Positions 44,501 through 47,500 of a stretch of 64,000 bases of DNA are shown here, one piece after another (the first letter of the stretch is position 1; each line of letters begins with the position of its first letter). The position numbers and the translations under genes were made by a program. Source of the stretch: Paragordius varius. Lineage: Eukaryota; Animalia; Nematomorpha. The stretch is from positions 496,001 to 560,000 of the forward strand of contig OZ176059.1 in NCBI GenBank assembly GCA_964247055.1, read 5' to 3'. The notes under the pieces are model-generated. The model did not search any database, was not told where the DNA came from, and saw only the letters and a list, made by a program, of their open reading frames with translations.

Positions 44501-47500
44501 TTTGGTGGTGTACCGGGTAAGCAAATAATTTTTTTTAGTTTTACAGTGTAAAACTTTTTTTTTCTTTAAAGTTGAATTTGGAATTTTTTCTATGGGCAAA
44601 ACGTAAATATATATAAGGACAATTTTATTAAAAGACAATTCCATAATACCTTTTAAACGCCTTAATTTCGCCAATAAAAATCGATAAAATACAATTTGAA
44701 AATTAATAATTGATTGTGTTACCAATTTACATCTTCATTTAATAAATTGTTGTTTAAGATAATCATTTATATTTGAAATAAATATTTCAAAAGTATGGTT
44801 GACTATTCTGAAATATTTGTTGTCTTTATGTTTTTACGTTTTTAATTTAAATTCTTACTATAAAAGTTAATATTCCTCGTTGTAAAGAATGGAAAAAACC
44901 ATTTTTTGAGAATGTGAACTTAACCCTTTGAATTTTTTTTAAAATTTAATTTTTTGAATTTTTGAAAACCTCTATCTATACTATATGAATAATGTTACCT
45001 TAATTATCATTATAGAGAATATTACTAATGCTGGTATCTTAACTTTAGCTGTGAATATATAGTAAAACTATACTTTTTTTTGAAAAATAACAACAATTAC
45101 GAAATTTCATTTTTTTAAAATATAAAAAAATATCAGTAATTTTTAATCTTAGAAAACATAATTTATTTTAGGGTAAATTTGAATTGTATAAGGGTGAATT
45201 AAAAATGTTTATGAGTGTTTTAAATAGTTCAAGGGTGAATTTGATATATATGGCAAAAAAGACAAACAGCTTTAGTATATATAATTGTATGGAGATCAGG
45301 CTGTATGGTACTATAAAAAATGATTATAGCTCTTATCGAAGGAGTGTGTTTCGGAACGGTCCAGATTTTGTCTTGCTAAAAAAACAGACTTAACCCAATA
45401 TTTTTACATAAAACATTAAAATTTATCGTATTCAACAAAAAGTTGCCCACAAAAAATACTAATTTAAATTATTGTGCACGATAATAAAAATCAATCAAAT
45501 ATCTAATATTTTGGTTAAAAAACCATGTCTTTTGACAAACCCTCAATTTTTTTCTAAATTACGCAATTGTAACATATTAAAATAAGTAATTACCAATCAG
45601 ATCTCTTCCTTTTTGCTACCCCTACTCGATAGGTTTTATACAGTAAAAAATATAAACTACAAAGTTTATGGTTGCCTGTAAGAAATATTTTTAGACTTGT
45701 TATATTTTGTCTTTTTTGAAGAGTTTTCTTAACTTAGCCAACCCCATTTTAATATGGAAGGTAGTTATATATTCCCTACCTTGCTATGTATGTCATTTTG
45801 GCATTCAATAACATTTCTATTATATAAAAATTCGCATATTGTATCATGGCACTAAGATCTATATTCTTTGATTAGTTTTTTTGATAAAAAATTACCTGCA
45901 TTCATCGAATATCATTGAAATTTTGTAGATATGGTAATACCAAATAATTGGGATTCCAAAAATTATACAATGACTTTTGATAGGAATGACTCATGCTGCT
46001 TTAAATCTCCTGTAAAATTTGAAATCAAAATTGGACATTTTTGTAGATTCATTTTTAATATAATAATGCAAAAGTCAAATTAGCAAACTTGTGAAAAAAA
46101 ATTTAGTAAATAGAGGTAGTTTTAGCATAAAAGTATTTAACCCCTACCCCTCTACTAAATACTCTTACAATTTCGGTATACATTTTTTTGATGTAATACA
46201 TAATTATCGTTAAATGTTTTAATTGGATGTATGAATTTAACCTTAACTATTCAATGTACCCATAGAATCCGCTTGGATTTTAATGATGTATATTATTTAC
46301 GTTTTACATTAATTTTTATAGCCTCTAAATCCATTCTATTTAATTTATATAACTATTAATAAATAAAATTAAAATACAGGAAATAAATAATCAAACAAAT
46401 TTATATATATATATATATATATTAAGTTCTAATTATTTTTAACAGTTTAGTATCTTTTCACTTTTTTTAGACACTTTTTTGGGGAGGTTTGTACACCACA
46501 GTTGAACTAAACCCAAAGTACTGTTATAAAAGTTGTCTGGTTAAAGTTTAACTATTAAACATTTTTTTGAATTACAGTTTTGTAACTTACAGAATCCAAA
46601 ATTTGGAATACTTACAAAATGATTCAAACAAACAGCTACTTTTATTATTACCAAATATATCAATAAAAGCCTTTGCTATAAAATGTTAATTGAAATCACA
46701 TTTTAATGTTCATTTTATTCGTATGATATCGGGTATGTGGGATTATAAAATTTTCATGTATTTAATTAAAAACTTTTATTTATGTATGATATAAATTAAC
46801 ATGAGTAGAGATAGTTAGTCTACTTAGTTGTAGGTTGGTTATATTATTTTCAAATTATAAAAAGCTTAATCGTGGCTTACGGATTATAAGGAGTCATAAT
46901 ATCTGGCTGAACTAGTACAATCAGTTGTTTAATATGGATTCTAAGCTCTGAAATATTCATTTACCCGACTCTATTCAAGTTCAAATTCTCTAAAACTCAA
47001 TATATATACAATTCCTGAACTGACAGTGTTTACCCGTGTTCATTATGTGTGGCTGATGAGTCCACAAAAAGGACGAAACGTGTCTCACACTATGATAAGT
47101 GGTAAACACTGTCAACAAAATTTGGGTTTCTCATAGTCTATAACTTTTAAAGAGATGACGCCTTCCGCTAAAAAAATCCTTATTATCTATTTATGTGTGA
47201 TGTTTAGAATCGTCGCCCGAATTTCTGTTACCTTCTTCTTTCCAACCAAATGCCCCCAAGAGTTACAATAAAAATATTTCTCAATTTTCTCAATCATCCA
47301 AAAATGAGAATGAACTCTTTTTTGCTCAATTGGATAGTAATCCTCTGATTATGCAATCGCATCCGTTGGAAAGACATAAAACTCAAGACTCAAAAAGTAA
47401 GCCGCCTTTGTCATCCTTTAAATTGTTTGTTGAAAAACAACGCGACAATCAAAAAACCGATGCAAATGACAAGGATTTTTCATCTATGGAAGAAAAGAAA

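Follow-up and report, generated by a model that had tools for sequence, protein, structure and literature searches.

When a self-cleaving RNA motif is found in an intron, a short distance upstream of a 3' splice site, the question arises whether it serves the gene in which it lies or still belongs to a mobile element. Such a motif, here called HHR2, lies in the window studied here (the whole 64-kb stretch of DNA that was analysed), in the sense orientation within an intron of an ERCC6-like gene, and it had been suggested in the original prediction that its structure is conserved relative to its flanks and may influence inclusion of the C-terminal exons.

The host gene and its modelled acceptor

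By protein similarity, the host gene is an ERCC6/CSB/Rad26 orthologue on the + strand. The exon at 43126-43455 matches human ERCC6 (962-1014; E = 1.1e-13), with Rad26 as the next best match; Helicase_C matches were also found, and exons carrying SNF2 motifs span from about 25.4 kb to 43.4 kb on the + strand. An upstream ERCC6-like exon (44216-44516, +) ends in phase 1 at the donor G/GTAAGC, whose GT occupies 44517-18, and the modelled ERCC6-like acceptor AG (47206-47207, +) is phase-matched to it. This is the only AG between an in-frame stop (47198-200) and the open frame; the AA that follows it gives the codon GAA, continuing an open frame of about 122-124 codons. The putative ERCC6 exon so defined (47208-47572, +) is of low complexity, has a frame that is long for DNA of 27% GC, and shows a GC content of 32.9%, like that of the confirmed exons (30-35%), against 23.6% in the neighbouring intron. 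A search for homologues of 47210-47572 returned just two low-complexity matches in 1.84 billion representatives and, as the segment has no recognisable homologues, we infer its exon status. PDB searches with 44216-44515 and 47998-48162 gave no meaningful match, and a motif search for the conserved C-terminal domain of CSB downstream yielded nothing convincing. Disabling changes are absent from the ERCC6 exons, suggesting that the gene is still spliced normally.

The HHR2 hammerhead and its expected activity

Judged by its core and helices, the HHR2 motif is a canonical animal type-I hammerhead. It is contained in a hairpin at 47021-47114 (+), made of a closing stem, an extended helix I and the catalytic core (47053-47084, +), the latter placed both by direct reading of the sequence and by alignment to the Rfam model Hammerhead_HH9 (RF02275). 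CUGAUGA (47053-47059) and GAA (47075-77) can be read from the letters, the second within GAAA, and an A15.1-U16.1 pair and a cleavable N-U-H site complete the pattern. Helix II comprises 4 bp (GUCC 47060-63 with GGAC 47071-74), with the G10.1-C11.1 pair at its base and all hammerhead core nucleotides in place; helix III is the single pair A47078-U47083, capped by the loop CGUG; and helix I, of 6 bp (47047-52 with 47085-90), forms the open end of the three-helix layout and is extended into a closing stem of 14 perfect base pairs (47021-34 with 47101-14). At the GUC site, C47084 (C17) is the cleavage nucleotide, with the predicted cut between 47084 and 47085, that is, 123 nt from the exon start (47085 to 47208). 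The original prediction had placed cleavage after 47084 in an intact core, 123 nt from an acceptor phase-matched to the donor at 44517, and coordinates and frame agree with all of this; its perfect closing stem was likewise recovered, with 14 bp in place of the 13 given.

The hairpin reaches a folding energy of -41.9 kcal/mol (z = -5.96), with none of 200 shuffles folding equally well, and its minimum-free-energy fold mispairs part of the core. In the 64-kb window the pattern CTGATGA-N6-30-GAAAC occurs twice (32019 and 47053) against 0.06 occurrences expected, the first marking a second motif, HHR1. Rfam returned no match at the gathering score over the whole window, so that HHR2 misses the curated threshold; in a 401-nt scan Hammerhead_HH9 gave HHR2 31.1 bits (cut-off 52; E = 4.9e-6) in an alignment where helix III is collapsed, and HHR1 scored 32.6 bits. 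Matches to mir-2008 (E = 2.7) and sR44 in the same scan were set aside as chance-level. Across 30 hairpins (25 distinct sequences of a family too uniform to reveal covariation), 94.9% of cells were paired and no compensatory changes were seen.

Helices I, II and III of 6, 4 and 1 bp, the last of them capped by a palindromic loop, constitute the canonical metazoan design, for whose one-base-pair helix III poor monomer activity has been reported (PMC4209133, PMC7229834). Monomer cleavage by a single minimal motif was undetectable (PMC4209133), and an axolotl analogue of the 1-bp helix III design reached 6% monomer cleavage in 1 h (PMC7229834). Because of its one-base-pair helix III and palindromic loop, the hammerhead appears to be designed for cleavage as a dimer within multimeric transcripts. 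In HHR2 the palindrome reads ACGTGT, against ACGCGT in HHR1, T47081 being a private C-to-T change; ACGTGT was found in HHR2 alone among 30 hairpin-selected copies. The predicted helix III duplex amounts to -3.1 kcal/mol with this change, compared with -7.5 for the unchanged palindrome. The two sequences had been read correctly in the original prediction, which called the palindrome broken; it is weakened and not abolished, since ACGUGU RNA can still pair with itself by way of two G-U wobbles. HHR2, a lone monomer whose palindrome is weakened, would be expected to cut poorly, if at all. Cofolding of full hairpins merely exchanged long stems between strands and was uninformative on helix III dimers.

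A dispersed repeat family

The hammerhead recurs throughout the genome, with at least 41 exact cores against none for a reversed-pattern control, and at least 41 scored hairpin matches of 91-100% identity among 112 candidates. The HHR2 hairpin itself is 88-97% identical to those of 29 other copies. HHR1 (31820-32195, +) belongs to subfamily B and lies in sense orientation in an ERCC6 intron further upstream, inside the remains of a Harbinger-type transposon that is supported by DDE_Tnp_4 matches; it is flanked by a 23/24-nt target-site duplication, and the other arm of the inverted repeat retains the empty site. On alignment, HHR1 and HHR2 belong to two subfamilies of one dispersed Penelope-type, ribozyme-bearing repeat.

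The repeat unit is non-coding, low in GC and 283-284 nt long, within the 170-400 nt of retrozyme units, and carries a type-I hammerhead. Its length of about 284 nt was taken from the 283-284-nt direct repeat in two copies, L002 and L004; a multiple alignment of 800-nt flanks proved too gappy to define the ends, and pairwise BLAST was used instead. Among the exact-core matches no tandem direct cores about 284 nt apart were found, the copies being solo or in head-to-head/inverted pairs, and tandem repetition was limited to a 27-nt partial remnant in place of one hammerhead per direct unit. As these matches include no true tandem dimer, a circular-RNA "retrozyme" life cycle is not demonstrated here.

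No open reading frame of at least 110 aa pointing to an enzyme adjoins any of 30 copies (within 1.5 kb), and an ORF combining reverse transcriptase (RT) and GIY-YIG, as expected of an autonomous Penelope-like element (PLE), was present within 1.5 kb in 0 of the 30. Elsewhere the genome does have intact ORFs in which GIY-YIG comes after RT motifs, accompanied by pLTR-like direct repeats and an inverted partner, the Pfam support for these loci being weak. The PLE loci examined have no sequence in common with the element within 1.5 kb, nor an Rfam hammerhead, and no autonomous partner was identified for that reason.

HHR1 and HHR2, which represent different subfamilies, share one host gene, each lying in the sense orientation in one of its introns, and there is a third core some 40 kb upstream of the window. 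Such clustering of cores around ERCC6 exceeds what a density of about one copy per Mb would predict.

Anatomy of the HHR2 insertion

The HHR2 element measures 397 nt (46791-47187; 32.7% GC) and is bounded by a 14-nt target-site duplication. The left copy, TATTTATGTATGAT (46777-46790), agrees with 47188-47201 in 13 of 14 positions, and the two abut the element precisely at either end; an equally long run was found in 0 of 2000 shuffles of the 40-nt flanks, and a match at the exact boundaries in 1 of 20000. The left arm (46791-46845, - strand) repeats the element's 3' tail in inverted, 5'-truncated form and has its homologue in the left arm of L004, itself the reverse complement of L004's post-hairpin tail. 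It is followed by the upstream part of the repeat unit, of subfamily A (46846-47020, +), with 80-88% identity to at least 17 copies over the full 175 nt, then by the hairpin, and finally by the 3' tail (47115-47187, +), which, by pairwise alignment, lacks an internal stretch of about 85 nt after 47139 that L004 retains. The close subfamily alignment of HHR2 stops at that position, and many copies have tails or arms that match 47139-47194. In L004 the order is inverted tail arm, partial tandem remnant (27 nt, 283-284 nt upstream), full unit, tail, and a duplication of 13 nt. Variable duplications longer than 4 bp (14 nt in HHR2, 23/24 nt in HHR1 and 13 nt in L004), an inverted 5'-truncated arm and a tail are the marks of retro-insertion, and the same arrangement, an inverted 5'-truncated copy beside a direct copy with partial tandem, tail and variable duplication, has been described for PLEs (10.1101/2021.04.23.441226).

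The pyrimidine tract immediately preceding the acceptor is now the right copy of the duplication (47188-47201), which ends 5 nt before the AG; the insertion thus lies within the 3' splice-site region, in the tract 6-20 nt before the acceptor AG. The element tail must therefore probably supply the branch point now, and CTAAA at 47169-73, 34-38 nt before the AG, is a candidate. It appears that the target-site duplication restored the pyrimidine tract and AG and that the insertion was tolerated on that account.

Conservation of the hairpin and its flanks

The hairpin had been held to be more conserved than its flanks, estimated at about two-thirds identity to those of HHR1. Between HHR2 and HHR1 this is borne out, with 83 of 94 hairpin positions identical and a measured flank identity of 65-67% (row L022). 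More generally, hairpin identity is 88-97% in both subfamilies, compared with flanks at 82-91% (subfamily A) and about 65% (subfamily B). Picking copies by their hairpin inflates hairpin identity, and copies were re-sampled through the flank; this took away most of the apparent hairpin excess within subfamily A, the flank-ascertained copies being 87.8% identical in the hairpin and 84.8% in the flank (p = 0.068), so that here the claim finds no clear support. As the alignments stand, a hairpin that outlasts its flanks is seen only between subfamilies A and B. Since the hairpin is common to both, the contrast would reflect constraint on the mobile element or sharing of a module, and not selection at the ERCC6 locus.

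At the HHR2 locus itself, private changes number 3 in 94 hairpin positions and 9 in 200 flank positions, with all three hairpin changes at paired positions; the ribozyme thus does not show the fewer changes than its flanks that would be looked for in an exapted hammerhead. A hairpin conserved between repeat copies whose flanks have diverged is no evidence of host function, and the reading of this conservation as a sign of such function fails on the two-subfamily nature of the repeat, the unclear excess among flank-ascertained copies, the private changes and the monomer-poor helix III design.

Proposed origin and alternative readings

Taking the insertion anatomy and the repeat family together, we consider it probable that HHR2 is the ribozyme module of a 397-nt non-coding retrozyme/PLE-like copy that has decayed neutrally since landing in ERCC6. 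The element would be an animal "retrozyme", that is, a non-autonomous PLE, most likely pasted in by a PLE reverse transcriptase-endonuclease, and its hammerhead would serve the element's own RNA processing. The copy would have inserted, sense-oriented, into the pyrimidine tract at the 3' splice site of an ERCC6 intron, where the duplication would have regenerated tract and AG and the tail probably provides the branch point, and its later changes would be those of neutral decay. Against this origin weigh the lack of a true tandem dimer among the exact-core matches, the absence of shared sequence at the PLE loci examined, the lack of covariation in so uniform a family, and the clustering of cores around ERCC6. 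Use of HHR2 by ERCC6 is without support.

It has also to be considered that the insertion alters ERCC6 splicing without any catalysis. The original branch point would have been moved by about 410 nt, cryptic AGs (47135-36 and 47149-50) and a hairpin some 30 bp long stand just upstream of the acceptor, and cryptic 3' splice sites may give truncated isoforms, with the tail again acting as branch point. Both the place of the insertion within the 3' splice-site region and the position of CTAAA are as this would require, and the cryptic AG at 47149-50 would open a stop-terminated frame of 44 codons (47137-47268). These arguments are, however, purely positional, the acceptor's exon is itself a modelled one, and the integrity of the ERCC6 exons points to splicing that proceeds normally, so that we regard such an effect as unlikely.

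Co-option of the ribozyme, by which a co-transcriptional cut between the 5' splice site and the branch point or acceptor would tune inclusion of the C-terminal ERCC6 exons, appears highly improbable. The sense orientation, the intact core at its short distance from a phase-matched acceptor and a hairpin better kept than its flanks in the comparison with HHR1 all speak for it, as does the precedent of conserved intronic type-I hammerheads of amniotes, which likely act in mRNA biogenesis (PMC7229834). HHR2 is, however, one of many dispersed copies and not a single conserved locus; its private changes betray no locus-specific constraint, in copies sampled through the flank the hairpin is not clearly better conserved, monomers with a 1-bp helix III cleave poorly, and the weakened palindrome belongs to this copy and to no other of the 30. 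Moreover, about 43% of Xenopus retrozyme copies overlap introns, and an intronic copy is thus unremarkable. A further proposal, in which the insertion remade the 3' splice site, the tail acts as branch point and HHR2, alone or paired with HHR1, cuts the pre-mRNA in competition with splicing and so gates full-length versus C-terminally truncated CSB, we hold to be very improbable indeed.

That HHR2 is a chance consensus match or a generic hairpin (miRNA-like or a MITE foldback) could be argued from the empty Rfam result at the gathering score, the lack of covariation and the mispaired minimum-free-energy fold, but it is scarcely credible given the complete core with its G10.1-C11.1 pair, helix lengths and GUC site, the HH9 score in the local scan (E = 4.9e-6), the excess of exact cores over the control and the meaningless mir-2008 match.

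Comparison with known systems

The retrozyme/PLE-like copy proposed here finds its nearest counterparts among the metazoan non-LTR retrozymes (PMC7229834), above all the amphibian HHR_Amex1/newt satellite-2 type, with which it shares a type-I hammerhead with helices of 6, 4 and 1 bp and a palindromic tetraloop, an AT-rich non-coding unit of about 284 nt (range 170-400 nt), duplications longer than 4 bp and the presence of PLEs in the same genome. It differs from these retrozymes in that the present copies are solo or head-to-head and form no long direct tandem arrays, that two-site cleavage and circular RNA are not evident from a 27-nt tandem remnant, and that helix I is extended into a closing stem of 14 bp. 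The hammerheads of PLE pseudo-LTRs (PMC4209133) likewise have a palindromic helix III and are thought to act as dimers; unlike them, the element has an RT-EN ORF on 0 of 30 copies, shares no sequence with the inspected PLE loci and has a "canonical" core in place of the minimal PLE variant.

Hammerhead_HH9, the best-scoring Rfam model, describes an amniote intronic ribozyme whose core, loop 2 (CAAAAA) and helix I internal loop are similar to those of HHR2, which is also intronic and in sense orientation. In contrast to HH9, HHR2 falls short of the 52-bit score, has a helix III of 1 bp instead of 3 bp with a loop, and is multi-copy where HH9 is a single conserved locus.

HHR2 is otherwise unexceptional, a copy of a mobile element of known kind that is of use chiefly for annotation. 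Its position is what sets it apart, as a retro-insertion in the acceptor tract of a DNA-repair gene constitutes a natural test of 3' splice-site tolerance, and the locus is also a natural test of whether a weak ribozyme in an intron is of any consequence. In human CSB-PGBD3, a piggyBac transposon in intron 5 of ERCC6 captures splicing; this DNA transposon is domesticated and codes for a protein, and alternative splicing has been documented for it. HHR2 resembles it as a mobile element in an ERCC6 intron that could change which C-terminal exons are joined, and differs from it in being a non-coding retroelement copy.

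The HHR2 hammerhead and its host gene

The hammerhead motif HHR2, located on the + strand in an intron of an ERCC6-like gene and surrounded by AT-rich eukaryotic DNA (about 27% GC) with multi-kb introns and numerous short repeats, was confirmed as real. Its CUGAUGA core (47053-59) lies within a hairpin at 47021-47114, where helix I (47047-52 with 47085-90, 6 bp) runs via internal loops into the closing stem, helix II is formed by GUCC/GGAC with a 7-nt loop (ACAAAAA) and followed by GAA, and helix III is a single A-U pair closing the loop CGUG, after which comes C47084. The core nucleotides, helices and C47084, as read from the sequence, bear out the location, core and cleavage site of the original prediction, as well as the distance of 123 nt from cleavage to exon start; the closing stem (47021-34 with 47101-14) is perfectly paired, over 14 bp rather than the 13 given, and the remaining factual statements on HHR2 all hold. 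The hairpin is predicted to fold at -41.9 kcal/mol (z = -5.96), far above shuffled sequences in stability, and the window contains two instances of the core pattern where 0.06 would be expected. HHR2 has no Rfam match at the gathering score; a local Rfam scan aligned it, its helix III collapsed, to Hammerhead_HH9 with 31.1 bits (E = 4.9e-6; the cut-off is 52), and HHR1, the second copy in the window, behaved alike (32.6 bits). At 60576-60618 (+) lies another hammerhead-like motif, the third in the window and unrelated to the other two; its core is CUGACGA, its helix III a minimal ACUAGU, and Rfam Hammerhead_1 gives it 25.9 bits in a 401-nt scan (cut-off 34, E = 3e-4).

The + strand carries exons, starting at about 23.6 kb and reaching 48.2 kb or beyond, that were queried singly and encode SNF2 motifs and Helicase_C. 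The assignment of the host gene as an ERCC6 orthologue is sound, since exon 43126-43455 has human ERCC6 (residues 962-1014, E = 1.1e-13) as its best match, with Rad26 and ATRX ranking lower. The predicted phase match between the splice sites of the HHR2 intron was recovered: the donor G|GTAAGC (exon end 44516, GT 44517-18) is in phase 1, and with the AA after the acceptor AG (47206-07) the reading frame continues into an open frame of 124 codons. Long open frames occupy 47208-47572 and 47998-48162, and their GC content of 33% resembles that of confirmed exons (30-35%) rather than that of the intron (24%). No homologues of either were detectable by sequence search, and the membership of the exons 3' of this intron in the ERCC6-like gene is less certain.

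Origin of the element

HHR2 is a copy of a hammerhead-bearing, non-autonomous Penelope-type retroelement, a known kind of element. Of 112 candidate matches to its 91-nt hairpin in the 110.6-Mb genome, at least 41 were scored, at 91-100% identity, and the exact core occurs 41 times there, a reversed control not once; no enzyme-like ORF was found near the hairpin copies at 30 loci. The 30 hairpin-selected copies split into two subfamilies, A with HHR2 and B with HHR1. The best-preserved relatives, also the nearest to HHR2, are four copies, L002-L005 (G000:C10:2883793, C6:7863463, C2:5641641 and C1:11675896), whose shared flanking homology, at least 2.6 kb long, marks a single insertion within a larger repeat of at least that length. 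A weak DUF4371 match in this carrier points to a hAT-type transposon, and the hammerhead insertion has multiplied as its passenger.

In these four copies the order is post-hairpin tail as an inverted copy, 27-nt piece left from a prior unit (283-284 nt upstream of its counterpart), complete hairpin-bearing unit and tail, with a 13-nt direct repeat bounding the insertion on both sides. HHR2 has the same plan minus two internal deletions, with a left duplication (46777-90), inverted arm (46791-46845), unit (46846-47139), residual tail (up to 47187) and right duplication (47188-47201); the duplication copies are identical at 13 of 14 positions, and an equal-length run appeared in none of 2000 shuffles (40-nt flanks). 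HHR1, a 376-nt insertion whose duplication measures 23/24 nt, lies in the left arm of a palindromic, decayed Harbinger/PIF-type transposon within an ERCC6 intron (31226-34463; arms 95-98% complementary, DDE_Tnp_4 spread across two frames), the right arm of which keeps the empty site. In the literature, insertions of Penelope-like elements are recognised by a 5'-truncated copy in inverted orientation, a partial tandem, a tail and a duplication of variable length, and the arrangement seen here agrees with this description (10.1101/2021.04.23.441226). In its 6-bp helix I, its 4-bp helix II and its helix III of one pair and palindromic loop, the ribozyme follows the 'canonical' metazoan type-I hammerhead of retrozymes (PMC4209133, PMC7229834). 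Elsewhere in the genome, intact ORFs of 758-788 aa carry RT motifs (GVPMGSP, RYVDD) followed by GIY-YIG, and are flanked by 133-nt direct repeats and an inverted partner; a sequence link between these loci and the hammerhead element was looked for and not found. Positions 6238-9551 of locus L037 (G000:C1:4908000-4917999) form a candidate autonomous Penelope-like element, in which Rfam finds no hammerhead, and similar inverted pairs exist on C3, C6 and at other C1 positions.

Conservation of the hairpin

The proposal that the hairpin is conserved relative to its flanks stands for HHR1 against HHR2 (88% versus 65-67% identity, the latter matching the two-thirds estimated for the flanks). Compared with HHR2, the flanks of subfamily A are 82-91% identical, those of subfamily B (HHR1 among them) about 65%, and the hairpins 88-97% in either subfamily; the contrast therefore belongs to the lineages of the element rather than to the ERCC6 locus. 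Gathering the first copies with the hairpin as query inflates hairpin identity; copies were therefore re-sampled through the flank 46846-47020. Among 14 independent full-length flank matches, identity was 87.8% in the hairpin and 84.8% in the flank (Wilcoxon p = 0.068), with no clear excess for the hairpin; several flank-sampled copies have a truncated or deleted hairpin. Nor is conservation locus-specific: within its subfamily, HHR2 has private changes at 3/94 hairpin and 9/200 flank positions. All three hairpin changes affect paired positions. Copy L023 shares two of them (the GATAAG sequence), which may therefore predate the insertion. The third, C to T at a CpG site (47081), alters the stem III palindrome to ACGTGT, as had been noticed; this form is unique to HHR2 among the 30 hairpin-selected copies, occurs in one flank-found copy, and is predicted to weaken the 6-bp dimer helix from -7.5 to -3.1 kcal/mol. 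No covariation was detected in the hairpin family, which is young. Overall, the original interpretation of HHR2 is partly supported.

Insertion at the splice site and expected activity

The splice-site location of the insertion is what is new here, and the interest of HHR2, low to moderate, rests on it. Because the right duplication copy ends 5 nt ahead of the acceptor AG, the element integrated into the final 6-20 nt of the intron, and the duplication regenerated the pyrimidine tract and AG. The earlier branch-point region is now about 410 nt upstream, for which the element tail, with CTAAA at 47169-73 (34-38 nt before the AG), would be the obvious candidate replacement; cryptic AGs within the element would lead into a short frame closed by a stop. 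Hammerheads of this design are reported to cut poorly as monomers and much better as dimers; monomers of the axolotl HHR_Amex1, which has a one-pair helix III and a palindromic tetraloop, were 6% cleaved after one hour, the dimer being far more efficient (PMC7229834), and the activity of single minimal motifs was not detectable (PMC4209133). As a solitary unit whose palindrome is weakened, HHR2 is unlikely to cleave ERCC6 pre-mRNA to any appreciable extent, and the geometry of the insertion is a more likely source of any effect on ERCC6, such as the suggested influence on its C-terminal exons, than the predicted catalysis.

Genomic context

An intronic copy is unremarkable, since about 43% of Xenopus retrozyme copies overlap introns. 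Three exact cores lie within 87 kb (G000:C10:456383, about 40 kb upstream of the window; C10:528019, HHR1; C10:543053, HHR2), two of them in sense in one gene, and this clustering exceeds the expectation from about one copy per Mb; averaged over the genome, exact cores number roughly one per 1-3 Mb. With HHR1 and HHR2 in different subfamilies, a local duplication does not account for the cluster. Another ERCC6 intron contains a reverse transcriptase of the non-LTR type (RVT_1) with a PHD finger after it, broken up into several frames (40324-41878, +). An abundant MITE-like repeat of 21-nt tandem units (CCCTTGAACAATTCAAATTCA and its complement), commonly in inverted pairs (e.g. 42302-42499, 41960-42096, 62849-63222 and 18565-19128), occupies much of the intronic and intergenic DNA.
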